Of a stretch of 64,000 nucleotides of DNA, positions 2,776 to 63,221 are shown piece by piece. A program made the translations under genes and the position numbers. The DNA is taken from positions 1-64,000 of the forward strand of contig CDMY01000240.1 in assembly GCA_001179505.1 (NCBI GenBank), in the 5' to 3' direction. The DNA is from Vitrella brassicaformis CCMP3155. Its lineage: Eukaryota > Protista > Chromerida. A model generated the notes under the pieces. That model saw nothing but the letters and a program-made list of their open reading frames with translations. It was not told where the DNA came from and did no database searches. How positions within the stretch are numbered: the stretch's first letter is position 1; every line of letters starts with the position of its first letter.

Positions 2776-3882
2776 TCACCCCACCACCCTCCCCCTGTCG
2801 ATGACGGCACTCCCGAGCTCGAATGGCCGCAGCAGACGGCGGGCGGCACCAACCGACACAGAGTAGCGCTGGGCGAGCGGCTGGGACCGATCGGCAGCAG
2901 ATGGCTCGGTCGTGTGCAGACTGATCGAGCCATATCCCCCCGTCTCAACCGACACGTGGGCGGCGACGGTCTCGTTGGGCCGAAAGCAGCTCACAATCAC
3001 ACGACGATTGTCCCTCGGATACGCAGAACCCAGATTGCCCCCGTCGTAGCGCCAGTCGGCAGTAATGCCCTGATCCTCTGTCATGTTGTCGGTCGTCAGC
3101 AGACGGCGATGACGAGCGTCGTCACCATAGCCGATGCCTGCCGACAGCACCCGCCTCTCGCTCACCCAATCTTCATCGTACCACCAGCTGAGCAGCATGT
3201 CGAGCAGGAAGGCCGAGAATGAGCGCACGAGATAGTTGCTCCAGCGGATGACGGGATCGGTCCGCTTGTAGCCCTCAGCATAGCGATGGCCGCCCGGCAG
3301 ATCACCCAACGGCACCACACGAAACGTCCAACCGCCAATCCGATAGTGGCCGTTGTCGGCTCGGCGCAGCTCCAGGCTGGTCCCTTTGTGTGTGAGCTGG
3401 TGGCCGATGATCTTGTAGATGGCCATCGCCAGGGGCAGCTGGTGGAAGGCCGTTGCTGTGGGCAGCGAGGAAGCCGACAGCCGGAGGGGCCGCGTGGCGT
3501 CAGCAGGGGTTAGCCGATAGATGAAGGCCAGCCGAAGGAACCGCCCCATTGCCCGCCACTCCTCGCCACTGCCCCGCTTCAGCAGATAGACCACCTTCAG
3601 GCCGCCCTCCAGATCATCGTCAATGTCGAAGGCCAACACGTCCGCCAGGCCGAGACGACTGATGTGCTCATCCACGCGGCGCCTCACCTCATAGAGCATC
3701 GTGTCGACATCATAAGGATCGCTGTTGCTGATCTGTGAGCGAAAAGCGGCTCGTCTGTTGGGGTCAGTGGACATGGCCATGCCGGCCATCTTTCTGATTG
3801 CGATGCTGCGCAGTGGTGGGACTGCCGGCGGGGCGGTGTGGCCATTGGGAGGGGGAGGCGGAGGCTGGGAAGAGGACGCCAT
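2776..3882 (-). CDS. Family A, subtype A1, hypothetical protein (368 aa, intronless)
   Basis: Intact ORF sharing LADVLAFDI..D.E.GLKVVYLL.RGSGEEW, FRVVPLG.LPGGH.YAEGYKRTDPVI, SFSAFLL, NETVAAH and TTEPSAADR..VIDRG.VVG with 8 other copies in the window. Confidence 0.8.
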   Translation of the reverse strand: MASSSQPPPPPPNGHTAPPAVPPLRSIAIRKMAGMAMSTDPNRRAAFRSQISNSDPYDVDTMLYEVRRRVDEHISRLGLADVLAFDIDDDLEGGLKVVYLLKRGSGEEWRAMGRFLRLAFIYRLTPADATRPLRLSASSLPTATAFHQLPLAMAIYKIIGHQLTHKGTSLELRRADNGHYRIGGWTFRVVPLGDLPGGHRYAEGYKRTDPVIRWSNYLVRSFSAFLLDMLLSWWYDEDWVSERRVLSAGIGYGDDARHRRLLTTDNMTEDQGITADWRYDGGNLGSAYPRDNRRVIVSCFRPNETVAAHVSVETGGYGSISLHTTEPSAADRSQPLAQRYSVSVGAARRLLRPFELGSAVIDRGRVVG

Positions 3883-4219
3883 CAGTCAGTCAACTGATCT
3901 GAATCAATGACACACACAAAGTGGCAATCAGTGCTCCCGAGATGAGTGTGCGTCTGTGTGCTAACCTCAAAACACTTGGCTATGAACAAATCTCTCTCAG
4001 CAGCCCAACACCATATGGGTGGGCGATGATTGACTCTGCAGGGACACACACGCAGCGTGGCAAGCCCGTGTGCTCACGAGCATCGGTCAAAATCAGTCAA
4101 TATCACAGCGAGGGAATCGGACGAGCCACCTACCGTCAGCAATGGCCTCCAGCGGCCCAAATGAAGCAATGGTGTGGCTATGTGGCCGTCGTCGTCAGCG
4201 AGCCCAACGAGGCACTGTG

Positions 4220-4580
4220 GGAGATCTGCAGGCACACAAAACACCGAAGCACAAGCTGATTGAATTTTTCAACGCTTCATCTGCCTCTCTCGCTGCCACC
4301 TTACCCTCTCTAAGCGTCTTGAGAGCTCCAGAGGCCTTTTGGCGCTTATTGCCGACCTGCGAGCTTTGGCTTTACGTCATCTTTTTTCGGTATTCTTGAC
4401 AACAGGGCCGCGTAGAGTGTCGGGAAGATGCCCAAAGAGCCGCTGTGATGACATCGATCAACACAGATGTGGCCGTCATCTGTCTGAGTGACGCCGATCT
4501 ATCGCATTGAGGTGAGGGAGGGGACGCAGGAGGGCCTGATGACATCAGCAATGATAGCCTGTGTGGTTTCTGTGTGTTTG
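4220..4580. repeat. Conserved spacer element between divergent gene pairs (other copies about 7740-7830, 9330-9500, 12910-13270, 50830-51180 inverted, 61570-61940)
   Basis: Recurrent blocks gagatctgcag.cacaca..aca, gcttcatctg.ctctctcgctgcc, gagccgctgtgatgacatcgatca..cagatgtggc, cgcattgaggtgag and gggcctgatgac..cagcaatga.agcctgtgtgg. Confidence 0.8.
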
Positions 4581-4664
4581 CGGCAGATTTGACGCCTTTG
4601 GGTATCGTTGTGCGGTTGAGGGAGAGAGGAGGAGAGCGCTCTGTCGTTGGTATCGGAGACCATC

Positions 4665-6169
4665 ATGGGCTGCAGTGCGACCAAGGTACGGGAAGGAAAG
4701 ACAGCCGCTCGGATGTTGACAGATCGATGAAGCGCCACAAATCCATTCACTGATATGATGTCCGTGATGTGTCTGTCGCGGATGTGCAGATCACGTCGGC
4801 TGCTGCTGAAGGAGGTGGTGGTGGCTCCATAGCTGACGAGCCGTCCTCGTCGGCTGCGTCTGCCGCCAATGGTAACCAACAAGTTCGCTCGAGAAAGGCA
4901 CGACAATGCCGGCACACAGCTGTCTGTCTGTTTATGTGGCGTTTTGCAGGTGCGGTCAGTGCATCGTCGGCGAACCACCACCAGCAACAGCAGCATGATC
5001 GCCTTATCAGTGCCGCTGACGTGCCGCAACACCTCGCCCCGACGGTCGCCGAGTACGTCAGGAGTTACTCACAGCTGGAGGCCCTCATCGACGCCCATCC
5101 CACCCTCCGCACTCCCTCCCTGCTGCTGCCGATCCTCATACGACTGCTGCCCGTAGTGGTGGACGTGCCAGTGCCCCAGCTGGCCCTGGACGTGGCTGCT
5201 CCGGCGACCTCCCCTCATGGCAGCGCCCTCTCCCGATTTCTCCTGCCGCTCGTGATGCGTTCGCTGGGGGTGCTGCTGCCTACTGTCGGCCTCGGCTCAT
5301 TCCTGATGCGCATAATCCCCCAATTGCCGCTCCCTCGATCACTCAGCCACGGCTGCCGCATGGCAATCGCCATCGAGCAGCTGACCCGCCGGCTGAAGAG
5401 GCTCGAGAGGGGCGGCGATTGGGCCAGATGGCGGCCTCACCTGGAGATGCTGTACCTGCTGCAAGGCAGGAGGCCTGTGGTGCTGGGTGACGAGAGCTTC
5501 GGTGTGTTCGGCAGCCGGGCGGCCTTCGTGATTGAGACAGAGGCGGTCCGGCAGTGGAAGATACTCAGCCGGGGCGTCACTGTCACTGATCATGATGGCC
5601 GGCACAGACAGGTGATGGACGGCGACAAGGTGCGCTGCTACAGCTTCAGCCTCAGGCACTGGGGCTATAGCCTTCCCACCCTCCTCCCCTCTGCCAGCCC
5701 CCTCTTCCCTCACGTACCATTTGACCCCGCCGACCCGCCCACAGAGCGAGACGGCTTGACATACCGCAGCTACACCTCAATAATGGCCTTCGTCCTGTTC
5801 TGCTGGCTCAGGTGTGGGGGCCACCTCCCTTGCATCAGATCCTGGATTTCTTGGCGTCGTGACTCTGCTGCATCCCGGCGTGTGAGGGAGCTGCTGGCGG
5901 CCTCTCCCAGCGATGCGGCACAGTGGGGGGCGGGGGCGACCGTATTCGACAGGAAGGATGGGTATGAACGGCATTATCGTTTGGTGGTGCTGGGCAGTGA
6001 GGCGGTGGGCGAGGGGCACATGGCGGTCATTTGGCTGAGCGATCGGGAGGGTCATTCTAAGGATGTCATCATACATTCAACCGAGCCGGCCCCCCACGAC
6101 CGCACACGCGATATCGTGATGAGAGGTCTGGGGCCCCACCTGGGGGGCATCGCGTGGTGGGAGGAGTGA
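4665..6169 (+). CDS. Family B hypothetical protein, copy 1 (F-box-like N-terminal segment; putative MGC myristoylation exon)
   Basis: Exon 1 4665-4685 (MGCSATK|gtacgg), intron to gtgcag 4789, in-frame 78-nt intron 4872-4949, then the long ORF with VPQHLAPTVAEYVRSYSQL, LERGGDWARWRPHLEMLYLL, EAVRQWKILSR and RLVVLGSEAVGEGHMAVIWL. Confidence 0.75.
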
Positions 6170-6484
6170 GAATGCTGAATGGATGGTAGCAGCAAGACGA
6201 TAGATTGTGGTATGTCCTGCCAGTCAGTGCATGAGGGTCTCGGCCACCACTGAGCAGATTGTCGATCATCGTTTTCAAGCAGCAGACCGACACAGACAGA
6301 CAGACAGACAGACAGACAACGGGTTGTTGCCCATCCTTCTATCCATCCATCCATCCTGTGGTATGTCTGTCTGTCTGTCTGTCTGTGTGTGTGTGTGTGT
6401 GTGCATTATGGGGGACGGGATGACGTGTGTGTGACTGACCACCAGGCGTCCTGTGAAGGGTTGCGTTGATTGTGAATGAATGCT

Positions 6485-6685
6485 GGAGGGGAGGTGAGTG
6501 TGAAGCGACTGAGGAGGTGGAGGAATGACAAATGTGACGATGTGTATGTGTGTGTGTGAATTTGTTTGTGATCGATCGACCATTGCAATGACGGACAGAG
6601 CAACTGATTGTTTGTCCGTCTGAATGTCTCTCTGACTCGCTGCCGTTCACGTTGCCTGCGCTTCTCTCTTGGTGATCGATGAGTG
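6485..6685. repeat. Copy 2 of the TPT1 3'-flank repeat
   Basis: Aligns by eye with 1518-1775 in the same orientation. Confidence 0.8.
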
Positions 6686-7159
6686 AGTTTGTTCAAGTGA
6701 CTTCAATCGACAAAAAAAAGCTGGCTTCTAGTCACCGAAGTGCATAGATACCGAGAAGATCCCACAACGAGATGAAGGCAGAAAGCCCGTCACGCCACTG
6801 CACTCATCCACAGTGAGAGAGGAGAGAGAGATACCGATGAAATATACACTAGCAGATAGACAACAGACGTACCTATCGCTTCATGATCATGATGACAACT
6901 ACGGACAGGCCGTGTGCGGTGTGGTTGTGTAGTCTGTGTGTATGTATTTTGTTCTACGTAGAACAATGACTATGTGTTCTGGTTTGCTGAACGAGGGGAC
7001 GCACAGACGGACAGACAGAGAGACAAATAGACAGACAGAAAGGGACCGTGACTGTCAGCCAGCCTCCATGCGTCTGTGGGTCTGTGGGTCTGTCTGTGTC
7101 TGTCTGAGCTTTGCTTTGGTTTGGTGTGACTGATCCACTTCCCCACGGACACAAAAGCA

Positions 7160-7341
7160 TCGCTGGCTACCTGTGGGTGGGGAATGGCGAAATCAGCCTG
7201 TGGACGATCGAGTCCCCTGCTGCCGATCGGTCTCATCCGCTCGCTGTCCGCTATCCAGTGTCGGTTGGTGCCGTCCGCCGTCTGCTGCGGCCATTCGGTC
7301 TCGAGCGTGACGTCATCGACAGGGGGACGGTGGTGGGGTGA
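7160..7341 (+). pseudogene. Orphan family A C-terminal fragment
   Basis: IAGYLWVGNGEISLWTIESPAADRSHPLAVRYPVSVGAVRRLLRPFGLERDVIDRGTVVG* with no upstream family sequence. Its downstream flank 7345-7620 matches 49310-49560 inverted. Confidence 0.8.
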
Positions 7342-8125
7342 GGGGTGGTGACCTGATAGGTGTTCCGGCATGTCGACCGACCAGAGCGTTTTAACGCGCC
7401 AAACGGACTGCCTCTTTTCTGATGAGAGTCGGCTCTGCCTCGCGTCGGTCGTGCCAGCATGAATGAATCAATGTCTCACTCGTTGTTATGGGACACTTTT
7501 GACTGCACATTAGTGAGTGAATGAATGGATCAGTGCAGATGACCCTCGACTCGTCTGATGGTCACATCGATCAACAAACGTCCTCGACCGTCACCGCCCC
7601 CTTCTTTCTTCCTTCCTCACTCATCCCTGAAGATCTGTCTCCGAATTTGGTGACGGCAGGGCCGTGTGGAGTGTCTGACGGATGCTCAAGGAGCTGCTGT
7701 TATGCTCTCGATCCGCACACGTGCTGCCATCTCATCTGAGTGAGGCGGATCTGACAAGTTGAGTTGATGTAGGGCGGGCAGGAGGGCCTGATGACGTCAG
7801 CAATGATAGCCTCTGTGGTCTCTGGTGTGTTGGTGCATTGGTTTGGTTCGTTTGCACACAGAAAGTCATTCGCCATGCATATGAATCAATGCTTGTTCAT
7901 TCTCGCAGTCGGTGAGTCAGCGAAAGGCATACATACCACGCTGTTCAGTCAGTCACATAAACTTACATAGAGAATGATCGATGCTCAAGGAACCAGCGAC
8001 TCGATTGACAACAAAGACTGACGTACAGAGCAGGGGGGGAAGAGCCCAACTAGGCTATGTAATGTACATACACCCATCCACCATCCCCACCCACGCAGCC
8101 TCTTCACACATGCATCTGCAACTAA

Positions 8126-8901
8126 CTACCTTGGGCTGCCCACAGCGGCGACGCGCTGACGCAGCCCATCCCCTTCGGCTGGATTGCCCGCCTGCTGCGG
8201 CATTCCTTCAACAGGAGGACCCTCAATTTGCGTCAGGACAGTGTCACATGATAAAGGTGAGCCTCTGGCGGGTGGTGAGACATTCCCTGAGAAAAGAAGA
8301 AACGACCTCACACAGTCTCAGTTGGAGATATGCCTGCCTGCCTGCCTGCCTGCCGCCCGCGTCGCTCACCACCATTGGACGCCTGGTTCACAGCAGGCCC
8401 GACCATCTGATGGCTGGTATTTGCGCTCGTCTGTTCCTCCGCAGCCCCTCCAGGCTGCGGACCGGCTTCTTGAATGCGTTTGCGCAGCTCCTCTCGCGCC
8501 TTTCTCAGCAAGCCCTCCAAGAACCGGCAGCGTTCGATAGCCTCATCGACATCGATCTCGCACTCCAGAAAGTTCATCTGGCGGCGATGGTCGTTGGGGT
8601 CTGCATCCAAGCGCTCCTTGGCGAGTTGCTTGCATCCGGACAGCTGCCCGATGTGCTGGCCAGACCAGCTGGTGAGGGATTTCAGTTCGTTGACCGTCCG
8701 CTCCGCCTCCTCGCGCGTCGCCCAGCGGGTGAGCTCCTTGTACCTCTCATGTCGGACAACCGCTGAGTTGACCCAGCCAGGCGTCCAGGACGGACAGTGG
8801 TCGAGCAGCCAGGTGTACAGCCGGATGCGGAAGACGCCAAACAAGCCGACGGCGCACGCCACGAGGGCCGCCACCGACACAAGCCCGAAGAACCACGACA
8901 T
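8126..8901 (-). CDS. Hypothetical protein with N-terminal signal anchor/TM and coiled coil, 2 exons
   Basis: MSWFFGLVSVAALVACAVGLFGVFRIRLY (hydrophobic) followed by a charged helical region. A putative intron (gtgagc...ttttctcag) leads to GNVSPPARG...VGSPR*. Confidence 0.5.
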
Positions 8902-9581
8902 TTCTCCGGAGGGCAACTGGGAATCAGACGAACTGCACGTGGAGGGCCGGACGGCAGCCCGTCACCAGGACTCTGCAGACACACAACAGCACAGATGCGG
9001 TGTGTACAAGTGCTATCATATTATGCAGCACCACACAGGCTCACCGAGGCCGTCGCAAAAGCGGCGGAAGTCGTCACCTCTCAGCGAGAAGGGTGCGAAA
9101 AGGGTGAGCGATAGATCTGCAGGCAAACGTGCACAAACCACAAGGCACCAGCAATTTGAAGCGCTTCGTTGATTTTGCCTCTCTGCCTATCCTCTTACCC
9201 TCCAATGAGGGGACGGGCTTCGTAGCAGCGGTTTCAGGAAGCACCCTTTCAAGATCTGCGAGCTTTTCATGAGTTCCTCGTCGGGTTTCACAGCGGGTGG
9301 GCGTAATGCACAAGGGCCTACTGTGATGCCATCGATCTGCATGCACCGTCCGAGTGGCGCTGATCTAATGCTGCGAGGTGCCCTCATCCCTGCGACGCCG
9401 TTCGGACGCTCTGAGGTGAGAGAAGGGCAACCAGGAGGGCCTGATGACACCAGCAATGACATCCCTGTGTGGTTCCTCTGTGTGATTGTGGCAGATCTGT
9501 GACTCACTAAGGGCTTCTTCCGTCGGCATGTTAACCGATGTGCGGCGATGGCTGAAGGGCTTATTCGCGGTGAGCCAGGCG

Positions 9582-10757
9582 ATGGGAGCAGCCTACAGTG
9601 AAACGGTCTGTCTGTGTTGATGTTGACTGCAGACATCGTCTGACGCATCAGCCACTGTCTTTGCCGCTGACGTGCCGCAAGATGTCGCCCCGACGGTTGC
9701 CGAGTACGTCAGGAGTTACTCACAGCTGGAGGCCCTCATCGACGCCCATCCCACCCAGTTCACCGCCGCCGTCCTGCTGCCCATCCTCAAGCGGCGGCTG
9801 TCCGTCGTGGTGGCCTCGATCTTTGGTGGCCTGGTGGAGGTGCCCCTACCTCAGCTGACTCAGAGTGTGTCCATCATTGTGGCCATCACACGTCGGCTCT
9901 TCATCCTCGAGAGGGGCGGCGATTGGGCCAGATGGCGGCCAGTGCTGGAGATGCTGTACTTGCTGAGGGGCAATAGGCCTTTGGTGCTGGATGACGACGA
10001 CTTCGGTGTCTGCGGCAGCCGGGCGGCCTTCATCGGCGAGACCGAGGCCGTCCGGCAGTGGAAGATACTCAGCCGGGGGGTCCCTGTCAGTTTTCGAGGC
10101 CAAATGATACGACTGATGGGCGCCAACATGATTTTCCGCCGCGGCGCCAACACGAGCCAGTATCTCCTCACCCCTCTGGACGGACCGAGCCCCCTCTTCC
10201 CTAATGTATTCGATCCAGCCAATCCGCCCACTCAGCTGAGAGACTGGACGAGCCCCAGCTACACATCGATGGTGGCCTTCGTCCTTTTCAGCTGGCTTCG
10301 TAACGGCGACCACATCCCTTGCATCAAGTTCTGGTTGTCTTGGCGTCCTGCCTCTGCTGCCTCTCGGCGTGTGAAAGGGCTGCTGGCGGCTTCTCCCAGC
10401 AAAGTGGCACAGAGGGGGGCGGGGGCGTTCGTGTTCGACGAAAAGTTCTCTGCCCGGGTGGTACGACAGGGAGATCCATCATCGGTGCCGGACGGGAAGA
10501 TAGAGAGCCGTCATCGGCGGCTGGTGGTGCTGGGCAGTGGGGCGATGGGTGAGGGGCACATGGCGGTCATTTGGCTGAGCGATCGGGAGGGTTATTATTT
10601 TCGTGATGTCTCCATCTACTCAACCGAGCCGGCCCCCCACGACAAGACGCGCACTGTCGTGATGAGAGTGTTGGGGGATCAGCTGGGGGGCAAAGTGTGG
10701 CGGGAGGAGAGGGAGACGGACGAGGCCAGGGAAGCTACGGCGTGCGCTGTGATGTGA
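9582..10757 (+). CDS. Family B hypothetical protein, copy 2
   Basis: The ORF from 9633/9672 has VPQDVAPTVAEYVRSYSQL, ILERGGDWARWRPVLEMLYLL and RLVVLGSGAMGEGHMAVIWL. Putative exon 1 MGAAYSET (9582-9605) is followed by a 27-nt GT-AG intron; the start is uncertain. Confidence 0.75.
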
Positions 10758-11506
10758 TCGGGGGCTCTGCTGTAAGTGTGTCGATTGTCCATCCAGGACA
10801 GACAGCTTGGCGGTCAATGAGAGGGGAGACAGACAGACAGACAGACAGACAGCCGGGCAAGGGGTTTTTGCTCTCTGCCCATCTGCTTGCATGGGCCTCT
10901 CTGTGCGTTCCCCTGGCTGCATCCTGCGAATGTCTGTCTGTCTGTCTGTCTGTCTGGAGCACTTGAGTGAATGAGCCCCATGTCACTTGATGGGAAAGAT
11001 GAAGGACAGTGGTTATGCTGGCTGATAGGTCCATATGTCAGTCAGACCTACACACACAGATGGACAAACGCACCCATAGACTCACTCGCGCGCACACACA
11101 CAGACACGTCTCATGACAGACACACGGCATCCATCGAGTAGGTCCCTCGTCTGTCAGTCAGACCCTCATCAACACAGCAGCCGACGGCGTCGTCCGGTGA
11201 CGTCCTGTGATCATGTTCATCAGTGTGTGTGTCGAGCCGCCCGGCCGTGCACACCAAACCTGCCACCCACCGAAACAGTTGACGTGTCGCTCATGGATTG
11301 TGTGGTTCATTCAGTCGTGCAGTCAGTGAGTCTGACAGAAATGAGTTAAACCCTCGCCCATCCGTCCCGACCACAATGCAAACAGAGCACATAAGCCATG
11401 CAGACGCACTCAGTTCCCCTCCACTAATTCTCGCCAGTCAGACAGGCAGACCCTCTCCACCAGTTAAATGCACCACCAACACCTAGTAGCCGACAGCCAG
11501 CACCCC

Positions 11507-12607
11507 TCATTCCATTACTGCTCCCCTGTCGATGACGTCACGCTCGAGACCGAATCGCCGCAGCAGACGGCGGGCAGCACCAACCGACACGGGGTAGCGC
11601 TGGGCGAGCGGGTGGGACCGATCGGCAGCAGATGGCTCAGTTGTGTAGAGGTCGATGGAGCCATCCTCCATCACCAGATGTGCAGCGATGGTCTCGTTGG
11701 GTCGGAAGCCGCTCACAATCACAAAACGATCGTGCCTCGCATCAGCAGCATTCAGATTGACCCTGTCGTAGCGGTAGTCGGCGACGATGCCTTGGTCCTC
11801 TGTGATGCCGTCGGTCCTTAGCAGACGGCCATAGCGCCGGTTGTCACGGCCAATGGTTCTAATGAGCACCTCCTTGTCGTCCACCCCCTCTCCATGTGAC
11901 CAATAGAGGAGCAGCCTGTGCAGCGGGAATGCCGAGAATGAGGGATACAGTTGGCCGCCCTGTCGGATGACGGGGTCAGCTCGCTTGTAGCCCTCAGCAT
12001 AGGGATGGCCGCCAGGCAGCTCACCCAACGGCACCACACGAAACGACTGATTGCCGGTCCGATAGCTCTCATAGGCCCCGTCATCGATTTGCTGCAGTGC
12101 CAGGCTGGAACCATAGTAGCTGAGCTGCTGGCCGATGATGTTGTAGATGGCCATGGCGAGTGGCAGTTGGTGGAAGGCCGTTGCTGTGAGCAGTGAGGCA
12201 GCCGGCAGACGGAGGGGCCGCGTCGCATTGGGGGTCAGCCGGTAGATGAAGGCCAGCCGAAGGAACCGCCCCATCGCCTGCCACTCCTCGCCACTGCCCC
12301 GCTCCAGCAGATAGACCACCTTCAAGCCGGCCTCCACATCACCGCCAATGTCGAAGGCCAACACGTCCGCCAGGCGCAGACGACTGATGTGCTCATCCAC
12401 GCGGCGCCTCACCTCATAGAGCATCGTGTCGACATCATCGGGATGGGTGTTGCTGATGTGTGAGCGGAGAGCGGCGCGTCTGTTGGGGTCAGTGGACATG
12501 GCCATTTCAGCCGCCTTGCTGATGGCGATGCTGCGCAGTGGCGGGACTGCCGGCGGGGCGGTGGGGCGATTGGGATTGGGAGGGGGAGGCTGGGCAGAGG
12601 ACGCCAT
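11507..12607 (-). CDS. Family A, subtype A1, hypothetical protein (366 aa)
   Basis: Intact ORF. The N-terminus is nearly the same as 2776-3882; the C-terminal framework is shared but the loops differ. Confidence 0.8.
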   Translation of the reverse strand: MASSAQPPPPNPNRPTAPPAVPPLRSIAISKAAEMAMSTDPNRRAALRSHISNTHPDDVDTMLYEVRRRVDEHISRLRLADVLAFDIGGDVEAGLKVVYLLERGSGEEWQAMGRFLRLAFIYRLTPNATRPLRLPAASLLTATAFHQLPLAMAIYNIIGQQLSYYGSSLALQQIDDGAYESYRTGNQSFRVVPLGELPGGHPYAEGYKRADPVIRQGGQLYPSFSAFPLHRLLLYWSHGEGVDDKEVLIRTIGRDNRRYGRLLRTDGITEDQGIVADYRYDRVNLNAADARHDRFVIVSGFRPNETIAAHLVMEDGSIDLYTTEPSAADRSHPLAQRYPVSVGAARRLLRRFGLERDVIDRGAVME

Positions 12608-13393
12608 CAGTCAGTCAACTGATCTGAATCAACGACACACAGAAGGTGACAGTGATCGAGAGGGAGATGAGTGTCCGTCTGTGTGCACCTTAAAACACTT
12701 GGCTATGAGGGAATGTCTGTCAGCAGCCCAACACCATATGTGATGGATGCGCTGGTGACTCTGCAGGCACCCACACAGCAGCATGATCCATCAGTGTCAG
12801 TCAATGCGACAGCGAGGGAATCAGACGAGCCACCGACCGTCAGCAATGGCTCCAGCGGCCCAAATGAAGCGATGGCGTGGCTATGCGGCCGTCGTCAACG
12901 AGCCAAGAAGGCACTGTGAGAGATCTGCAGGCACACAAAACACCGAAGCAGCAGCTGACTGAAGCATTTCAATGAATTCGTTGCCTCTCTGCATGCCATC
13001 TTACCCTCTCTTGAGCAGAAGAGGGATGGGATGCCCGTAGCGAAGATCTGCGAGCTTGGCATCGCGTAGCGAGGCGTTTTGGTGACAACAGGGCCGCGTA
13101 GAGTGTCGGGCAGATGCCCAAAGAGCCGCTGTGATGACATCGATCACCACAGATTCCGCCGCCATCTCCATGAGTGACGCCGTTGGGACACATTGAGGTG
13201 ATGGAGGGCAACCAGGGGGAGGGAAGGGCGTCAGCAGTGACAGCCTGTGTGATGTCTGTGTGTTTGTGGGCAGATATGTGACGTACAAGACCGACAAGGG
13301 AGCAGATCAGTCAAGGTGCGGCAAGGCATGCAGTGAGTGGTTTCGTCCCATCACACGCCGTTTGTGTGTGTCAGATCTCGGCTGCCGCTCCTG

Positions 13394-14542
13394 ATGGGCG
13401 CAGCCACCTCTAGCACGTCGCCGTCATGCCCGGGATTCTTCGCCTTCATGTCGCTAATCACACGTGGGAGGCAGCGAGGGCGAGAGGGCGTGTCCTTCTC
13501 GGCCGTCCCAGCTGAAGTGGTGCCGACGATCGCCCAGTGCCTCACCAGCTATGACGACTTGTGTGCCTTCCGCCGCATCGACAAGACCCGCCATGGCGCC
13601 CTCACGCCCGCCGCCCTGCTGCCCATCCTTACCCAGCTGCTGCCCGTCGTGGTGGCCTCTCTCGGCCTCGGTGGCCTCCTGGTGTGTATCATCCCCCAGC
13701 TGCCCCTCCGTGAGGCACTCAGCCACGGCTGCTGCACCGCATACCTCATCGAACAGCTCAGCCGCCGACTGTTCATCCTCGAGAGGGGCGGCGATTGGGC
13801 CAGATGGCGGCCGCACCTGGAGATGCTGTACTTGCTGAGGGGCAAGAGGCCTTTGGTGCTGAGTGACGACAACTTCGGCGTGTTCGGCAGCCGGGCGGCC
13901 TTCATGAGTGAGAGGGAGGCCGTCCGGCAGTGGAAGATACTCAGCCGGTGGATCACTTTCGCTGATGGAGAACAACAGAGACAGCTGATGGACGGCAACG
14001 CCATCCTTCGCCCTCACAATTGCCGTTTCACCCCTACCCTCCTCAACTCTCCCAGCCCCCTTTTCCCTCATGTAGCATTCGATCCCGCCGACCCGCCCAC
14101 AGAGATGGACGGCTGGACGAGCCCCAGCTGCACTCAAACGGTGGCATTCGAGCTTTTCAACTGGCTCGTTCGCAGCGGCCACATCCGTCGCATCAAATCC
14201 TGGTTGTCTTGGCGTCCTGCCTCTGCTGCATTCCGGGGTGTGTCTGAGCTGCTGGCGGCCTCTCCCGGCGATGCGGCACAGTGGGGGGCGGGGGCGACCG
14301 TGTTCGACGTGAAGCGGCCGGACGGGAAGGGGCATGATCGTTTGGTGGTGTTGGGCAGTGAGGCGATGGGCGAGGGGCACATGGCGGTCATTTGGCTGAT
14401 CGATTGGGGGGATTGTTGCCGCTCTGTTTATATTCTTACGACAGAGTCGGCCCCCCACGACAAGACGCGCACTGTCGTGATGAGAGCGTTGGGGGATCAG
14501 TTAGGGGGCAAGGTGTGGCGGGAGGAGAGGGATGGGCAGTGA
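13394..14542 (+). CDS. Family B hypothetical protein, copy 3 (clearest F-box-like segment)
   Basis: MGAATSS..., VPAEVVPTIAQCLTSYDDLCAFRRIDKTRHG (F-box-like spacing), LERGGDWARWRPHLEMLYLL, RLVVLGSEAMGEGHMAVIWL. Confidence 0.75.
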   Translation: MGAATSSTSPSCPGFFAFMSLITRGRQRGREGVSFSAVPAEVVPTIAQCLTSYDDLCAFRRIDKTRHGALTPAALLPILTQLLPVVVASLGLGGLLVCIIPQLPLREALSHGCCTAYLIEQLSRRLFILERGGDWARWRPHLEMLYLLRGKRPLVLSDDNFGVFGSRAAFMSEREAVRQWKILSRWITFADGEQQRQLMDGNAILRPHNCRFTPTLLNSPSPLFPHVAFDPADPPTEMDGWTSPSCTQTVAFELFNWLVRSGHIRRIKSWLSWRPASAAFRGVSELLAASPGDAAQWGAGATVFDVKRPDGKGHDRLVVLGSEAMGEGHMAVIWLIDWGDCCRSVYILTTESAPHDKTRTVVMRALGDQLGGKVWREERDGQ

Positions 14543-14589
14543 GCTGATGGGCGACGGGCAGATGGCACTCATCACGCTAGTGGGTTGCG

Positions 14590-49313: not shown

Positions 49314-49563
49314 GGGAGGAAGGGAGAAAGGGAGGGTGACGGTCGAGGACGTTGGGTGATCGATGTGGCAATCAGACGAGTCGAGGGCGATTGGCACCAT
49401 AATCCATTCATTCACTCACTAATGTGCAGTCAACAGAGTCCCATAACAACCAGTGAGACATCCGATGCGAAGCAGAGCCGACTCTTATCAAGAAACAGGC
49501 ACGTCACACCTTTGAAAGCTCTGGTCGGTCGACATGCCGGAACACCTATCAAGTCACCACCCC

Positions 49564-50594
49564 TCACTGCAGCACCGTCCCCCTTTCAATGACGTCACTC
49601 TCGAGACCGAATGGCCGAAGCGCACGGCGGGCGGCACCAACCGACACAGTGTAGCGGTCGGCGAGCGGATGAGATCCATCAGCTATAGGTGCCTCGGTCG
49701 TGAACAAATACTTCCCAACCACAGGTGAGCAGCGATGGTCTCGTTGGATCGCCAGCCGCTCACAATGACACTACGAAAAACAATCGGATTCGCATCATTC
49801 AGATTGCCCCCATCGTAGCGGAAGTCGGCGACGATGCCCAGACCCTCTGTGATGCTATCGGTCAGCAGCACACGGCCATAGCGAGGGTCACCGCGGCCGA
49901 TGTCTGCACGCAGCACCATCCTGCGGCCCATTCCCTCTCCATCGGGCCACCAGAGGAGTCGCCTGTGCAGCAGGAATGCCGAGAAGAAGGGAAAGAGATT
50001 GAGGCCGCAGCGGATGACGGGGTCGGTCCGCTTGTAGCCCTCAGCATAAGGATGCCCGCCCGGCAGCTCACCAAGAGACACCACACGAAACGGACCAGAA
50101 TTGCCGATCCAATAGAGTCCGTTGTCATCGGCTTGCTGCAGCGCCAGGCTGGTCCTTCTGTGTGTGAGCAGGTGGCCGAACAGCCGATAGATTGCCATCG
50201 CCAATGGCAGCTGGTGGAATGCCGTCCTGCTGGGAAGGTGGGCTGTCAGCCACTGAGCCGACAGCACCAGGGGCAGCCCATTGGCAGGCGTCAGCCGATA
50301 GATGGCGGCCAGCCGGATGAACCGCCCCATCCCAGGCCACTCGTTGCTGCCCTGCTCCAGCACATAGGCCGCCCGCAGCACACAGCTGAATGGGAGAGGG
50401 GCGGTGCGGTCGATGTCGATGAGGCCGGTGAGAGAGTGGCGGGCGAGGGAGCCGACGATGCGCTCCACCAGCAGAGCGGCGGTCACCAGAGCCGCCTTCA
50501 CCCGGCAGGTCGCTCGGACACAGACCGCCTCATGGACGAGAAGGGACGGCAGAATGCGCCTCCGCCACAGGTCGTCGGGCACCAAATCAGACAT
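49564..50594 (-). pseudogene. Family A, subtype A2, with a 10-nt deletion near 49705 that frameshifts the tail
   Basis: gggaagt|atttgttcacg versus gggaagtggctacatctatctgttcacg in the 62162 copy. Confidence 0.8.
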
Positions 50595-51219
50595 CGTCAC
50601 GACTCAGTCAGTGAGCGCATGACAACAACCTTCCTGACAGCACACAGGACACACACATGGAAGCAGAAATAGAGTGCATTTCGAATCGGCTTGCGTGGTT
50701 CTTCTCTCACCCTTCACAAGTTGACCACGTGCAGTGCAGGAGGCACAACGACGCCGGCCTGTGTGATCATGAAGCCTCTGTCTGCTCACTCGGGAAGATC
50801 AAGATGAACAAGGCAGACGGCGACTCAGACCTGCCACAATCACACACAGAGACCACACAGGCTGTCATTGCTGATGTCATAAGGCCCTCCTGGGTGCCCT
50901 CGCTCACCTCAATGCGTCAGATCAGCGCCGGTCAGAGAGATGACGGCGACATCTGTGTTGATCGATGTCATCACAGCAGCTCTTTGATCACCTCCCAGGC
51001 ACTCCACGCCGCCCGTGCAAAAAGGAAAGGCAAACGATCTGCACGCCAAGCTCGCAAAGCACGGTTTCGGACCCTCTCAAGGGACTCATCGGAGGTGAGA
51101 GGGCAGCAACAGAGACAGATGAAGCATCGGAGTGCCGCAAACCGATCCCTCTTCGTGTGTCTGTTGCGTGGCTGCAGATCTGTTGTGTGATTCCTCGCTC
51201 AGGCCTCAGGACACTCCCG

Positions 51220-52356
51220 ATGCAGCCCACTGGTGCAGCCCACCCCTCGTCCCGTCCCCCCAGCCCTGCCCTCTTCCAGCCCGCCGACCTCTTTGACCTG
51301 TCATTGCCCATCAGCAAGATGGCCGCCATGGCCATGGCGACTGACGATGCCAAACGAGCCGCTCTCCGCTCGCAGCTCGCCACCCGCACTCGGCAACAGG
51401 AGCTGCTGGGCCACACTGCGGAGACCGTCAACAGCACCCTGCTCAACGCCGTCCAGCAGCACATCCACAAGGCCCTCAGTCAAAGAGGTGTGGCGGACGT
51501 CTTGGCCTTCGACATTGGCGGTAATGTGGAGGCCGGCTTGAGGGTGGTCTATGTGCTGGAGCGGGGCAATGGCGAGGAGTGGCGGGCGATGGGGCGGCTC
51601 CCTCGGCTGGCCTTCATCTACCGGCTGACGCCTGCTGATGCGACTCGGCCTCTCCGTCTGTCGGCCGACGCACTGCCCACAGCAACGGCCTTCCACCAGC
51701 TGCCACTCACCATGGCCATCTACAAAATCATGGGCCGTCAGCTTACGCTCAGATGGCCCACACTGGAGCTGCAGCAAGTCGACGACAACGGACTCTATCG
51801 GATCGGCAATTCTGGTCCATTTCGTGTGGTGCCTTTGGGTGAGCTGCCGGGCGGCCATCGCTATGCTGAGGGCTACAAGCGGACCGATCCCGTCATCCGA
51901 TGGGGCCCCTATCTCTATCGCTCATTCTCGGCATTCCTGATGGACGCGCTGCTCTGGTGGTGGGACCGTGAAGAGGGGGTGGGTCAGAGGATGGTGCTGT
52001 CGGCCAACATCGGCTGCCGCGACCCTCGCTATCACCGACTGTTGAGGACCGACAACATCACAGAGGATCAGGGCATCGCTATCGATTATCGCAATGATGC
52101 GGGCAATCTCAATGTTGCTGATTCGATTGACTTTCGGAATGTGATTGTGAGCGGCTGCCGCGAAAACGAGACCGTCGCTGCGCACCTGTGGGTGGCGTGG
52201 GGCGGAATCAGGCTGTACACGACCGAGCCATCTGCTGCCCATCGACTTCAGCCGCTCGCTGTCCGCTTCCCCACTTCATTGCCCTTGTGGCGCAGTGTGC
52301 TGCTGGGATGCGGGCTTGACAACGATGTCATCAACAGGGGGCGGGTGGTGCCATGA
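51220..52356 (+). CDS. Family A, subtype A1 (MQPTGAA variant), intact
   Basis: MQPTGAAHPSSRPPSPALFQPADLFDLSLPISKMAAMAMATDDAKRAALRSQ...VADVLAFDIGG...VINRGRVVP*. Confidence 0.8.
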   Translation: MQPTGAAHPSSRPPSPALFQPADLFDLSLPISKMAAMAMATDDAKRAALRSQLATRTRQQELLGHTAETVNSTLLNAVQQHIHKALSQRGVADVLAFDIGGNVEAGLRVVYVLERGNGEEWRAMGRLPRLAFIYRLTPADATRPLRLSADALPTATAFHQLPLTMAIYKIMGRQLTLRWPTLELQQVDDNGLYRIGNSGPFRVVPLGELPGGHRYAEGYKRTDPVIRWGPYLYRSFSAFLMDALLWWWDREEGVGQRMVLSANIGCRDPRYHRLLRTDNITEDQGIAIDYRNDAGNLNVADSIDFRNVIVSGCRENETVAAHLWVAWGGIRLYTTEPSAAHRLQPLAVRFPTSLPLWRSVLLGCGLDNDVINRGRVVP

Positions 52357-57934: not shown

Positions 57935-59814
57935 CAAGAATAGTCGTTCTCTGCCGAACGAAGCGAACCAATCGGTCGCTGCGTAGCACTCGCGACATCT
58001 GTGCCGTGTGTGACGTGACAGCTGGGACATTGCCGTTTTTCTGTCGTCCTCATGGCTTGATTGGCTTGATTGGCTTGTCCGCCTGCTTGCTTGGATGGTG
58101 TCTCTTACTGTCGTCTCTCCATCTCTCCGTCTCTCTTTCTGTGCCCGTGTTGTGCGTGTGTTGTGTTGTGATTCGTTTCGTTGACTGGGCTGCCATTTTT
58201 CTGTCCCAGCTCGTCTGTACGCGGATGGATGGATGGATGCACTGATTGGGGGAAACATGGCTCGGGTCCTCTCTGTAGCGAGCTGGGCTAATCGAGACAA
58301 AAGTGGGGCGGGGAGGATGGCGTGATTAATGCTGCTGCTGCGTCCCTGCCTGCCCGTCTGGCTCGTTGCCGGCACGGGTTTTCCGCTATTGGTGATGCTG
58401 ACTGCTGCCCTGCCATGTATATTATCTATTACCTACTGTCCGTTGGGTGGGTCGGGTCTGATGTTCACACGTGAGAGAGAATTGTGACAAGCCTCTTGAC
58501 GATTGGCTGACTGCTGCATTCACGATTACGGTCCTGCGGGCGGGCGGTGGGTGTCTGGTGTTCTCTCGGTGCTTTTGTGCTTCCCTCAGACGGTTGTCGT
58601 GCCTGTGACTGACAGCAGGCAGGGAAGGCGTCTGTCGGTGGCGTCTGAGCCATGAGAGGACAACGGACCCCTAGGGACACGGGAGAGAGAGGGAAAGCCT
58701 CCTCGTGACGCTCTATCTGACTGACTGTGTGTGGGCACTGTGAATGTTCACCACCCCACCCCCACTCACTCACCTCTCTGTGTCGATCGATGTATGGCAT
58801 GGCTGTTGTACAGTAAGTATATACGGGGGACACCACAACGGAAAGGACGAGGGGTTCCATTCGTGCTGCTTCGTGGCTATCGAGCAAATATGCCTGCGAG
58901 CATGACTTCTCCATGATGTGTCACAATACAAGGCATCGAAGTGAGTCGAGAGCAGCCACAGCGCTCGACTCACACCGATGTCGAGGGACGCGACACATCA
59001 AGAGAGACGTGCCTGCCTGTCTGTTGGTCGTCGTCACTATCCCAAACTGATCTCAACTGGCTGGGCATTATGGGATTTTTCACTTGCGGCTGAGTACGTG
59101 TGTGCGTGTGATTGCGACTCAGAGAGGGAGTGCACTGTGTGTCCGTGTTGTGTGTGCCCAAAGGGCAGATTGCATGGCTGCATACCTTGATTGTGTTGTG
59201 GGAGTGCATGATGTGGATGGGTGGCTATGGACGAACGCGTGGATGAGGGATTCAATCGTAAATTTCGTTTCTCCAGCCCTGATCACGGACCGTCTGGGGG
59301 TACGGCGAACTCACAGGCACGACCCACATGATTGATGCCAGCTATAGACGAATTCGGCTCTCATGTATACAGTGCGGCTGTGGGCGTGGTCTGACTGTCC
59401 ACACCATGAGAATGTCAGCACCAACAATCACCATAGACATGCCCAAAGACAAGACTGTCACACGCCTGTTGTTGTACTGTCAAGCTTATCTGAGAGTATC
59501 ACGAGTGACGACAGCCTGACGGGCAGGGAGGAGGGAGAGCTTTAGAACATCAGCTGTGCCTGTCCGCCTGTCTGTCTGTCTGTCTGTCTGTCTCTGTCTG
59601 TGTGTCCTGTGGTCTGTTCGGATGGACGGACGCCTGTGTACACAAACACGGAGAGTAAGGAAAATTTGTTCTAAGCACTCTCGCTGACATACAGAGTACT
59701 CACGTCAGCGTCAGTCACCGGACACACAAACACACACATGGACACCCATGCAGCCATTGGCCCTGCCCTAACTCATTAAAGGCACCAACCATACCAGGCG
59801 CCAGCCGGCACCCC

Positions 59815-60306
59815 TCATCCCAACACTCTCCCCTATCGATGACGGCACTTTCGAGACCGAATGGCCACAGCAGACGGCGAGCGGCACCAACCGACACAGA
59901 GTAGCGGTCGGCGAGCGGATGAGGCCGATCGGCAGCAGATGGCTCGGTCGTGTACAGCTCGACGAGGCCATCTCCCACCCGCAGATGGGCAGCGACGGTC
60001 TCGTTGAGTCGGAATCCGATCAGAATGACATCACGATGGTCTTCTATATTGCCCCGATCGTAGCGGTAGTCGACAGCGATGCCCTGATCCTCTGGGATGT
60101 TGTCTGTTCTCAGCAGACGGCCGTAGCGAGCGTCGCCACGGCCGATGTCGGCCCACAGCACCATCTTCTGCTCCACTCCCTCTCCATCCGACCACCATAA
60201 GAGCACCCTGTCCAGCAGGAAGGCCGAGAAGGAGCGATTGAGCCATTCGCCCTGTCGGATGGCGGGGTCGGCCCGCTTATATCCCTCAGCGTAGGGATGG
60301 CCGCCC
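59815..60306 (-). pseudogene. Orphan C-terminal half of a family A gene, in tandem behind 60402-61538
   Basis: Begins abruptly at GGHPYAEGYKRADPAIR and runs to FGLESAVIDRG; its variable loops differ from the upstream full copy. Confidence 0.85.
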
Positions 60307-60401
60307 GTCCCCCCATTCATCGCACCTACTTCAAATCACTCAGTCCCCTTCCACCCGCCCTCTAACACCGCCACCAACACCCAATCGCCAGCCAGCACTC
60401 C

Positions 60402-61538
60402 TCACCCCGCGCCCATCACCCTCCCCCTGTCGATGACGACACTCTCGAGATCGAATCGCCGCAGCACAGCACACCACAGGGGCATTGACACGGGGAAGCG
60501 GTCGGAGAGCGGATGAGTCCGATCAGCAGCAGATGGCTCGGTCGTCCACACAGTGATGTAGCCATTTCCGACCCTCAGATGGGTAGCGACGGTCTCGCCG
60601 AATCGCCAGCCGCTCACAATCACACGACGACAGTCCCCCGCATCAGCAAAATTCAGACTGCCCCGGTCGTAGCGGTAGCCGACAGCGATGCCCTGATCCT
60701 CCGTGATGTTGTCTGTCCTCAGCAGGCGGCCATAGCGTGGGTCGTCACGGCCGATGTGTGCTTCAAGCACCAGCCTGTGATCCACTCCCTCTTCATCCGA
60801 CCACCAGAAGAGCAGCGAGTCAATCAGGAACGCCGAGAATGAGACGAAGAGATTGCCGCCGCATCGGATGACGGGGTCGGTCCGCTTGTAGCCTTCGGCA
60901 TACGGATGGCCGCCCGGCAGCTCACCCAATGACACCACACGAAAGGTCCACACATTGCCAATCCGATAGGCCCCATTGTCGGCTGGCTGCAGCGCCAGGC
61001 TGTGTGTGTTGTATGTGAGCAGGTGGCCGATGATTTTGTAGATGGCCATAGTCAGGGGCAGCTGGTGGAAGGCCGTTGATGCGGGCAGTGCGTCGGCCGA
61101 TAAACGGAGAGGCCGAGTCGCATTGAGAGGGGTGAGCCGGTAGATGAAGGCCAGCCAAAAGAACCGCCCCATCGCCCGCCACTCCTCGCCACTGCCCCGC
61201 TCCAGCACATAGACCGCCTTCAAGCCGGCCTCCACATCACCGCCAATGTCGAAGGCCAACACGTCCGCCAGGCCTCTTTGACTGAGGGCCTTGTCGATGT
61301 GCTGCTGGACGGCGTTGAGCAGGGTGCTGTTGACGGTCTCCGCAGTGTGGCCCAGCAGCTCCTGTTGCCGAGTGCGGGTGGCGAGCTGCGAGCGGAGAGC
61401 GGCTCGTCTGGCATAGTCAGTCGCCATGGCCATGGCGGCCATCTTGCTGATGGGCAATGACAGGTCAAAGAGGTCGGCGGGCTGGAAGAGGGCAGGGCCG
61501 GCGGGACGGGACGAGGGCGCCGCACCAGTGGGCTGCAT
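60402..61538 (-). CDS. Family A, subtype A1 (MQPTGAA variant), intact (378 aa)
   Basis: N-terminus nearly identical to 51220-52356; the C-terminal loops differ. Confidence 0.8.
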   Translation of the reverse strand: MQPTGAAPSSRPAGPALFQPADLFDLSLPISKMAAMAMATDYARRAALRSQLATRTRQQELLGHTAETVNSTLLNAVQQHIDKALSQRGLADVLAFDIGGDVEAGLKAVYVLERGSGEEWRAMGRFFWLAFIYRLTPLNATRPLRLSADALPASTAFHQLPLTMAIYKIIGHLLTYNTHSLALQPADNGAYRIGNVWTFRVVSLGELPGGHPYAEGYKRTDPVIRCGGNLFVSFSAFLIDSLLFWWSDEEGVDHRLVLEAHIGRDDPRYGRLLRTDNITEDQGIAVGYRYDRGSLNFADAGDCRRVIVSGWRFGETVATHLRVGNGYITVWTTEPSAADRTHPLSDRFPVSMPLWCAVLRRFDLESVVIDRGRVMGAG

Positions 61539-62161
61539 CGGGAGTGTCCTGAGGTCTCAGCGTGGCGTCACACAAGAGATCTGCAGCCACACACAACAGA
61601 CACACGGAGAGGGATCGGTTTGCAGCATTTCGATGCTTCATCTGTCTCTCTCGCTGCCCTCTCACCTCCAATGAGTGTCTTGAGAGCGAAAACGTCCAAT
61701 CCACTGATGGGGCTTTTTGCGAGCTTGCTTTGCAGATCTCTCCCCCTTTTTTGCGATGACAGGGCGGCGTGGAGTGCCTGGGAGGTGATCAAAGAGCCGC
61801 TGTGATGACATCGATCACCACAGATGTGGCGGTCATCTCTCTGACGGACGCTGATCTGACGCATTGAGGTGAGAGAGGGCACCCAAGAGGGTCTGATGAC
61901 ATCAGCAATGACAGCCTGTGTGGTCTCTGTGTGTGGTTGGGCAGGACTGAGTCGCCTTCTGCCTTGTTTATCTTGATCTTTGCGAGTGAGCAGACAGGCC
62001 GGCGTCGTTGTGCCTCGTGCACTGCACGTGGTCAACTTATGAAGGGTGAGAGAAGAACCACGCAAGCCGATTCAAAATGCACTCGCTGTTTGCTTCCTTG
62101 TGTGTGTTCTGTGTGCTCTCTGGCAGATGGTTGCCATGTGCTGACTGAGTGAGTCGTGGCG

Positions 62162-63221
62162 ATGTCTGATTTGGTGCCCGACGACCTGTGGCGGAGGCGC
62201 ATTCTGCCGTCCCTTCTCGTCCATGAGGCGGTCTGTGTCCGAGCGACCTGCCGGCCGAAGGCGGCTCTGGTGACCGCCGCTCTGCTGGTGGAGCGCATCG
62301 ACGGCTCCCTCGCCCGCCACTCCCTCACCGGCCTCATCGACATCGACCGCACCGCCCCTCTCCCATTCACCTATGTGCTGCGGGCGGCCTATGTGCTGGA
62401 GCAGGGCAGCAACGAGTGGCCTGGGATGCGGCGGTTCATCCGGCTGGCCGCCATCTATCGGCTGACGCCTGCCAATGGGCTGCCCCTGGTGCTGTCGGCT
62501 CAGTGGCTGACAGCCCACCTTCCCAGCAGGACGGCATTCCATCAGCTGCCATGGGCGATGGCCATCTACAAGATCATCGGCAATCTATCGGCTGTTCGGC
62601 CACCGGCTCACAGACGCAGGGAACAGCCTGGCGCTGCAGCAAATCGACGACAACGGACGCTATCGGATCGCCGGCGGTTGGCCGTTTCGTGTGGTGCCGT
62701 TGGGTGAGCTGCCGGGCGGCCATGGCTATGCTGAGGGCTACAAGCGGACCGACCCCGTCATCCGCTGGCCGGCCCTCCTCTTCCCCTCATTCTCGACATT
62801 CCTGCTGGAGAGGGTACTCGTCAGGTGGTGCTATGGTAAAGGAGCGGGCCAGAGGAAGGTGCTGCGTGCAGTCATCGGCCGTGATGATGCTCGGTATGGC
62901 CGTGTGCTGCTGACCGATAGCATCACAGAGGGTCTGGGCATCGTCGCCGACTTCCGCTACGATGGGGGCAATCTGAATGATGCGAATCCGATTGTTTTTC
63001 GTAGTGTCATTGTGAGCGGCTGGCGACCCAACGAGACCATCGCTGCTCACCTGTGGTTGGGAAGTGGCTACATCTATCTGTTCACGACCGAGGCACCCGT
63101 GGCTGATCGGTCTCAGCCGCTCGCCGACCGCTTCCCCGTGTCGGTTGGCGCCGCCCGCCGTCTGCTGCGGCCATTAGGTCTCGAGAGTGACGTCATCGAC
63201 AGGGGGACCGTGGTGGGGTGA
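62162..63221 (+). pseudogene. Family A, subtype A2, frameshifted by a 19-nt insertion at 62563-62581
   Basis: atggc[catctacaagatcatcggc]aatctatcgg versus atggcaatctatcgg in sibling A2 copies. Confidence 0.85.

Follow-up and report, generated by a model that had tools for sequence, protein, structure and literature searches.

A mosaic multigene family of Vitrella brassicaformis with a putative F-box head and a previously undescribed core domain

The window analysed here, a stretch of 64,000 nucleotides from Vitrella brassicaformis (CDMY01000240.1:1-64000, assembly GCA_001179505.1; G+C 50-66%), carries multiple copies of a gene family, family A, in which an N-terminal head of one of two types, A1 or A2, is joined to a common core of about 290 residues. 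It is clear from comparison of the copies that this repertoire evolves by birth and death, via segmental duplication and frequent recombination or gene conversion. The core is a previously undescribed domain with neither a Pfam family nor a solved relative, and in the A2 proteins it follows what appears to be a very divergent F-box. We modestly favour the view that the family A proteins are new cullin-ligase substrate receptors that evolve by birth and death and gene conversion; the main rivals to this view are relaxed birth-and-death drift and an enzymatic or ligand-binding role for the conserved sites of the core.

Copies in the window and their mosaic ancestry

Using three members as tblastn queries against the window, nine near-full-length family A loci were found, four of type A1 and five of type A2. 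The first-pass annotation, made from the letters of the sequence, had reported nine full-length copies; the number stands, but only five of the nine are intact. These include all four A1 copies, at 2776-3882 (minus strand, 368 residues, P0025), 11507-12607 (minus, 366 residues, P0024), 51220-52356 (plus, 378 residues, P0035) and 60402-61538 (minus, 378 residues, P0019), and a single one of the five A2 copies, the ATG-initiated open reading frame (ORF) at 39513-40550 (minus, 345 residues, P0001). In the A2 copy at 35900-36946 (plus) the frame is open, ATA stands in place of ATG and the gene model, P0006, starts elsewhere. The remaining A2 copies are frameshifted: that at 30658-31696 (plus, length 1039) near 30930-30980, that at 49567-50600 (minus) near 49707-49722, P0007 being its truncated product, and that at 62162-63221 (plus) near 62574-62587, a break spanned by an intron in the gene model P0009. 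When aligned to the intact copy, the lengths of all three are indivisible by three. Contigs from four public runs match the window across 62574-62587 without an indel; therefore this frameshift is not a private assembly error.

Among the A2 copies, identity falls from 90-95% in the first 110 residues to about 52-65% in the last 200, which bears out the earlier description of a near-invariant N-terminus followed by a divergent C-terminus; the framework motifs, and the loop strings after DP(V/A)IR, were likewise found in the alignments as first quoted. The origin of this contrast was examined in a codon alignment of 22 intact copies, nine A2 and 13 A1, drawn from the window and from nine other loci, leaving out locus L004, which overlaps the window, and the copy at L003:6808, whose ORF runs into N's. 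Between A2 copies, the median synonymous divergence (dS) in residues 60-125 is 0.086 and the nonsynonymous divergence (dN) 0.072, while in residues 126-347 dS is 0.43-0.58 and dN 0.24-0.37. The ratio of the two rates (omega) is about 0.6 in both parts. Since dS is approximately 5-fold lower N-terminally at similar omega, the constant N-terminus reflects recent ancestry or gene conversion, not stronger purifying selection. The contrast between a constant head and a hypervariable receptor part is mainly the result of mosaic ancestry by gene conversion and not of selection strength.

Exchange between the two types is also evident. The dS between A1 and A2 copies in residues 126-347 (0.47-0.52) is the same as that within types, and in segment trees the A2 copies form a clade (100% support) for residues 60-125 alone, none of the three C-terminal segments recovering it. 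Furthermore, a test of the pairwise homoplasy index (PHI) type gave p<0.001 for the core and 0.018 for residues 201-347, and half of the informative site pairs failed the four-gamete test. Recombination or gene conversion keeps the head and residues 60-125 near-identical within a type and leaves the C-terminal halves mosaic across types; the family would be a compact natural system for studying how conversion holds an adaptor head uniform as the recognition halves are reshuffled.

Duplication of blocks is seen directly when the window is compared with itself. An inverted repeat of 2.9 kb and 85.4% identity (49552-52350 versus 60414-63233) contains an A2/A1 pair, the A1 gene at 51220-52356 lying head-to-head with the A2 copy at 49567-50600, and 2763-4591 matches 11494-13278, a segment comprising an A1 gene and the spacer toward a gene of family B (see below). 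The family grows by the copying of such head-to-head pairs through segmental duplication and loses members by frameshift and loss of the start codon. There are hints that the A1/A2 pairs are units, for which a shared bidirectional promoter or a shared function is possible. The A1(minus)/A2(plus) pairing was also observed at two other loci, L001 (8217-11032) and L006 (1045-3857).

Three shorter pieces complete the family A content of the window: a C-terminal-only copy at 59811-60335 (minus; core residues ~180-347; gene model P0073, 201 residues), the last ~58 residues of the core at 7150-7323 (plus) and the last ~49 residues at 31733-31879 (plus). The C-terminal-only copy immediately follows the intact A1 gene at 60402-61538, is matched exactly by contigs of public runs and may be either a remnant or a donor for conversion. 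Two assembly gaps (N runs, 38609-38908 and 45026-45325) lie outside all family A copies, the closest copy end, 39513, being 605 nucleotides from the first gap, and tblastn of the window gave no family A similarity abutting either run. Since no copy touches the gaps, the findings are independent of continuity across them; a further copy may be hidden inside a gap.

Selection on the core

The strength of selection was estimated by maximum likelihood under the GY94 model, on a nucleotide tree with fixed topology. Omega is 0.567 for the core, 0.611 for helices and strands and 0.572 for loops. The average is therefore below 1 and the loops are not special, yet omega is not uniform, as trees made separately for each segment give values that rise along the chain: 0.38 for residues 60-125, 0.44 for 126-200, 0.73 for 201-270 and 0.70 for 271-347.

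Individual sites were assessed with a FUBAR-like grid of synonymous (alpha) and nonsynonymous (beta) rates written for this analysis. Purifying selection was found at 123 of 280 sites (posterior >0.9), 14.7% of the grid weight fell on beta>alpha, and 16 sites had a posterior >0.9 for beta>alpha. The count of sites above this posterior is unreliable (it reached up to 37 in null simulations) and the likelihood ratio was used instead. Compared to a grid limited to beta<=alpha, twice the gain in log-likelihood is 81.5, where 91 parametric simulations under the null gave a mean of 5.1 and a maximum of 24.4. With segment trees, which reduce the artefact that recombination introduces, the test beats every null replicate for residues 201-270 (25.5 versus a maximum of 11.1) and 271-347 (22.8 versus 16.5), and lies within the null replicates for 60-125 and 126-200. 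Per-site likelihood-ratio tests gave 10 sites at p<0.01, 8 at q<0.2 and 2 at q<0.1. With these caveats, the analysis shows that around 15% of sites, all at ~148-332 and statistically supported only in 201-347, outpace synonymous sites. The proposal that the variable stretches are under diversifying selection is in part retained: a class of sites with omega >1 is indicated, with statistical support only in 201-347, but mean omega is 0.57 and recombination weakens the tests. In the C-terminal 150 residues, diversifying selection on a minor fraction of sites is plausible, though sensitive to recombination.

The sites that recur in these tests (199, 212, 215, 219, 231, 268, 274, 276, 296, 300, 306 and 332) all fall in the stretches first described as variable. 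Those stretches had been called rich in tryptophan, tyrosine, phenylalanine and arginine; at the 16 candidate sites arginine is indeed enriched (18% versus 10%, p=3e-5), but the three aromatic residues are not (12.9% versus 10.4%, p=0.16). The spacing of the fast sites, with 272/274/276 and 231/233 on strands and 212/215 and 328/332 on helices, suggests that they occupy single faces of the sheet and helices and may cluster on one surface, in which case they would mark the surface that binds the target.

Alternatively, family A could be a young and decaying birth-and-death family under relaxed constraint, the variable loops being tolerant positions with no adaptive diversification and no recognition repertoire. 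An omega of 0.57-0.61 across the core with loops like the secondary-structure elements would be expected from such drift, as would the broken state of four of the nine near-full-length window copies, the three further fragments and the star-like, poorly supported tree; the two sites at q<0.1 are few, and recombination could have produced false positives. Drift is difficult to reconcile, however, with the purifying selection at close to half of the sites and a framework kept superfamily-wide, with a likelihood gain for omega>1 that is far above all of the null simulations and holds in 201-347 with segment trees, or with the many intact copies at other loci and the presence of several family members in MMETSP transcriptome sources. 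We therefore regard it as unlikely, although it is the rival that survives best.

N-terminal heads and the core domain

A word-indexed search returned 85 homologs, nearly all from Vitrella, and a profile search of 1.84 billion representative proteins returned 165 matches at E<=1e-3, 74 of them at E<=1e-30. Family A thus belongs to a superfamily of at least 165 clusters, essentially confined to Vitrella and built on the ~290-residue core, which also takes in family B. When 20 of the profile matches were looked up for source, all 15 with a named organism were from Vitrella; the other five were three JGI/IMG entries on short contigs, one MMETSP transcript and one weak match, P0198. The last (328 residues, on a 31-kb Logan/ENA contig with an A+T-rich codon style) matches profile positions 152-353 at E 2e-5; it is the only sampled match not attributable to Vitrella and may represent a related core domain from a different organism.

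Structures were modelled with AlphaFold2 using the family alignment, for the intact A2 copy P0001 (predicted local distance difference test score, pLDDT, 91.5; predicted template modelling score, pTM, 0.89) and for the A1 copy P0019 (pLDDT 87.2), and aligned exhaustively to 48,161 PDB representatives with VIA-align. By its structural matches the A2 model splits into three parts, residues 1-87, ~85-231 and ~225-347; in the layout derived from the model a divergent F-box occupies residues ~5-55 and the core residues ~60-347.

The six best matches of residues 1-87 are F-box proteins solved with Skp1 (Z 6.9-6.1; 69-81 residues aligned; root-mean-square deviation, rmsd, 3.4-4.0). They include beta-TrCP1 (Z 6.9, with 80 residues aligned at an rmsd of 3.4, and 6.5), Cdc4 (6.8), FBXO31 (6.6) and Fbs2 (6.1), and Fbw7, FBXW8, SLY1, FBXO42 and FBXO3 follow lower in the list. 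Three modelled helices (9-19, 22-31, 33-36) and the linker helix after them (41-54) fit the three-helix F-box fold of ~45 residues. At the level of sequence, 39 N-termini from A2 proteins and distant paralogs gave four matches to the Pfam family F-box-like, one to F-box and one to F-box-like_2, the best F-box-like match (E 5.6e-4, 20.1 bits versus a cutoff of 24.3) being below threshold; among the superfamily N-termini scanned there was no match to PF00646 or PF12937 at the curated threshold. A profile of the N-terminus was also compared to 177,635 PDB sequences, and F-box regions made up six of the ten best matches (Cyclin-F, E 0.033; FBXW7, 0.13; Skp2, 0.2; Legionella AnkB, 0.28; Skp2-like, 1.2; FBXO4, 1.8), and in the Cyclin-F and FBXW7 alignments the LP, hydrophobic and R-x-t-s-k columns of the profile coincide with those of the F-box. 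As F-box proteins account for less than one percent of PDB entries, chance does not explain such an enrichment. In addition, UniRef names the distant paralogs P0151 and P0170 'F-box domain-containing' and P0189 a tetramerisation-type BTB protein. Together, the fold matches, the weak profile matches and the names of the distant paralogs support the A2 head as a putative, very divergent F-box, related remotely and below Pfam thresholds. The F-box that the first-pass annotation had suggested from the spacing of the A2 start is thus supported by fold and weak profile evidence, but the window copies are blank against the Pfam F-box profiles at E<=10 and four of the nine copies, those of type A1, carry a different head with no F-box signal.

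In the A1 model a disordered, proline-rich start precedes a helical head. That this head might be a hidden F-box was tested and found no support: between A1-type and F-box-like N-terminal alignments, hhalign pairs nothing but the helix at the start of the core, which both share, and no F-box protein is found among the 50 best structural matches of the A1 model. Elsewhere in the superfamily the core is preceded by other heads still, and Pfam scans of 75 members identified TPR (three), ubiquitin (two), HMG box (two), Cyclin_C, BTB_2, SAP, TLDc and CBM_25, the BTB head being of the potassium-channel tetramerisation type. The N-terminal heads, including the putative F-box, the A1 helical head and the BTB type, are thus interchangeable on the core. 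In two A1-type members on other contigs, P0033 and P0084, the CBM_25 starch-binding module lies between the A1 head and the core.

The core itself has no known relative in the databases searched. Pfam matched no family on the full-length proteins, a sequence-profile search of PDB sequences with the family and superfamily alignments gave no match, Foldseek against the PDB gave nothing at E<=0.001 (best 0.22), and the ESM Atlas returned nothing useful by shape or by features. The models predict with high confidence an alpha/beta domain of two lobes, a middle one that weakly resembles SUKH/Smi1-Knr4 proteins and a C-terminal one with a TBP-like arrangement of sheet plus helices. The middle lobe (~85-231) of the A2 model resembles the SUKH proteins YobK (2prv_B, Z 4.3) and 2icg_A (Z 4.2), and the same lobe of the A1 model gives 2icg at Z 4.7 and 2prv at Z 4.2; these alignments span 113-120 of 152-159 residues in both models and are reproducible, with Z in the chance range. 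SMI1_KNR4 and the other SUKH families were absent at E<=10 in 41 members scanned singly and at E<=1 in the window copies. The C-terminal lobe (~225-347) matches phosphoglucomutase domain 4 (Z 6.1) and TBP (Z 5.9) in the A2 model, and phosphoglucomutase (Z 6.4) and TBP (Z 6.2) in the A1 model, the TBP-like superpositions covering 85-94 residues at an rmsd of 3.2-3.5 and 7-9% identity in both. The domain merits definition as a family and a solved structure. One A2 member, P0002 (L006 2720-3857), has ~37 residues of the core helix region duplicated internally, the segment LPL..SA..LP...AFHQLPLAMAIY being repeated.

Such a core need not bind proteins. It could be an enzyme or a small-ligand-binding domain in which the conserved residues H182, Y184, Y188, D192-P193, R196, T303 and E305 act, with the heads serving only to localise it and the variable residues forming an irrelevant surface. 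Consistent with this, the conserved polar residues lie within a confidently modelled loop, the 'TTE' motif is retained in the most distant paralogs, and the C-lobe is weakly like phosphoglucomutase domain 4 and several triphosphate-tunnel enzymes (Z 4-6.4). However, sequence searches linked the core to no enzyme family, the scores of the fold matches are low and concern one lobe only, substrate receptors typically show such fusions to F-box and BTB heads, and more than 150 fast-diverging paralogs in a single genome would be unusual for one chemistry. On this evidence we find a catalytic or ligand-binding role quite improbable.

Proposed function, related systems and neighbouring genes

The repeated occurrence of the core behind F-box and BTB heads is most simply explained if it is a substrate-recognition module of cullin ligases. 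The core would then work as a protein-recognition module, and the F-box of the A2 proteins, as modelled, would dock it onto Skp1-Cul1, leading to ubiquitination of the bound targets. The conserved 'LPGGH.YA.GYKR.DP' loop and the 'TTE' motif could provide a constant structural or docking element beside the binding surface. If the core does bind targets, Vitrella has a new kind of cullin-ligase receptor, based on a fold with no described relative and encoded by well over 100 genes.

Evidence for transcripts comes, apart from the MMETSP sources, from contigs matching 58000-63900 exactly over A1, A2 and C-terminal-only copies, which derive from two runs guessed to be RNA and two of unknown kind. 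In contigs of two runs, two GT..AG joints (61866-61943 and 62044-62126, skipping 76 and 81 nucleotides) precede the A2 start at 62162, within the spacer that separates it from the A1 gene at 60402-61538; these are probably introns in the 5' untranslated region of the A2 transcript.

Several observations weigh against the cullin-ligase receptor interpretation. Of the window's five A2 copies four are broken, and 13 of the 22 intact copies used in the analysis are of the A1 type, in which no F-box is detectable. The Pfam F-box profiles gave no match at E<=10 to ten A2-type N-termini, among them that of the window copy, and the F-box fold matches, which are to a predicted structure, all have Z<7, middling by the tool's own scale. 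Mean omega is below 1, with loops no different from secondary-structure elements; only two sites reach q<0.1 individually; and recombination, which the PHI-like test and the segment trees demonstrate, is known to inflate site-model tests. Lastly, the RNA label of the runs is a guess, and their contigs give neither level nor strand.

The closest parallels to a cullin-ligase receptor family of this kind are the expanded, fast-evolving F-box receptor families of nematodes and plants, for example those of Caenorhabditis (PMC8120010, PMC3719486). In common with these, the Vitrella family shows lineage-specific expansion into clusters with many pseudogenes, has what may be a conserved cullin-adaptor head ahead of a fast-changing C-terminal domain with a putative role in recognition, and has signs of positive selection limited to a minority of sites in that domain. 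Unlike them, its recognition domain has no Pfam family or solved relative, its F-box falls short of the profile thresholds, over half of the copies studied have a non-F-box head, the constancy of the head comes from gene conversion or recent ancestry and not from stronger constraint, and the organism is a free-living chromerid alga. If the interpretation is correct, adaptor expansion under diversifying pressure, known from nematodes and plants, would also have taken place in a free-living relative of the apicomplexan parasites. The chromerid genome paper (PMC4501334) mentions neither this family nor F-box genes in Vitrella, and no mention of either was found in other papers by literature search.

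A second comparison is with FBXO3/SKIP16 proteins (F-box, SUKH and ApaG), in which, as in A2 with its putative F-box, an N-terminal F-box is followed by an alpha+beta domain; the alignment of FBXO3 with the A2 model spans 210 residues (Z 5.0). SUKH domains, whose core fold has four helices and six strands in a split sheet, are versatile protein binders, and the eukaryotic FBXO3-type genes show no lineage-specific expansion (PMC3113570), whereas the Vitrella family is hugely expanded. The Vitrella core also differs from the SUKH superfamily in that there is no sequence-profile link and the structural Z is in the chance range, and from the FBXO3-type architecture in that its C-lobe is TBP-like and not an ApaG/Ig beta-sandwich. 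The likeness of that lobe to TBP and phosphoglucomutase domain 4 is one of a common two-layer arrangement, with no evidence of DNA or sugar-phosphate binding by the Vitrella core.

Going further, the family could serve this unicellular alga as an intracellular repertoire for recognising non-self or rapidly changing targets, for instance proteins of viruses, bacteria or selfish elements. The repertoire would be diversified by gene conversion from many paralogs, including broken and C-terminal-only copies acting as silent donors, and would have placed a new scaffold, possibly derived from SUKH immunity proteins, on cullin ligases via F-box or BTB heads. Such a repertoire would parallel the pseudogene-templated diversification of immune and antigenic-variation systems; we think it distinctly unlikely.

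Lastly, we consider it very improbable that these genes are carried by a selfish or mobile unit, for example a toxin-antidote-like head-to-head pair or a module borne on a transposon, that spreads and recombines for its own benefit. Divergent pairs (A1/A2, A1/B, and A2 with the family D genes described below) are duplicated as blocks, once as the inverted 2.9 kb at 85%, and the P0076 gene model opens with a segment judged by eye to be like a retroelement polyprotein, but in the self-comparison nothing is similar beyond the genes and the intergenic spacer that they share, neither terminal repeats nor transposase-like ORFs were seen alongside, ordinary housekeeping genes are interspersed among the copies, and no transposase, integrase or reverse-transcriptase Pfam family was reported among the 75 members scanned. 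A transposon origin was accordingly rejected, features in its support having been seen neither in the self-comparison of the window nor in that Pfam scan.

The three family B genes of the window, all on the plus strand, are B1 at 4665-6169, divergent to the A1 copy at 2776-3882, B2 at 9341-10757, and B3 at 13201-14542, head-to-head with the A1 copy at 11507-12607 at a distance of ~600 bp. They match the superfamily hidden Markov model (HMM) at E 6e-20 to 3e-28 and reach distant superfamily members at ~1e-9 in BLASTP; from these matches they are distant paralogs with the same core. Direct BLASTP of family A against family B is not significant (E 0.84), the link being made via intermediate paralogs and the superfamily HMM.

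Other genes adjoin the copies. Family D consists of small spliced genes with a signal-peptide-like start, at 29513-30220 (minus), 33745-35232 (minus) and 41156-42290 (plus), head-to-head with three A2 copies; it has no match to the superfamily HMM. At another locus (L010, CDMY01000600.1) an 847-residue gene at 6041-9494 (minus) with a weak match to the Pfam family Skp1_POZ lies head-to-head with the A2 gene P0005 (L010 10001-11035). Within the window, the gene at 19786-21792 (plus) contains approximately seven tandem 56-residue repeats (20017-21175; 168-nucleotide period, ~85% identical), with weak FG-GAP/Kelch matches and a HemolysinCabind match followed by a Ser/Thr/Pro-rich tail. The gene at 16380-18467 (plus) encodes a methionyl-tRNA synthetase, and GT/CA microsatellites in its introns appear as CVCVCV runs in the raw ORF.

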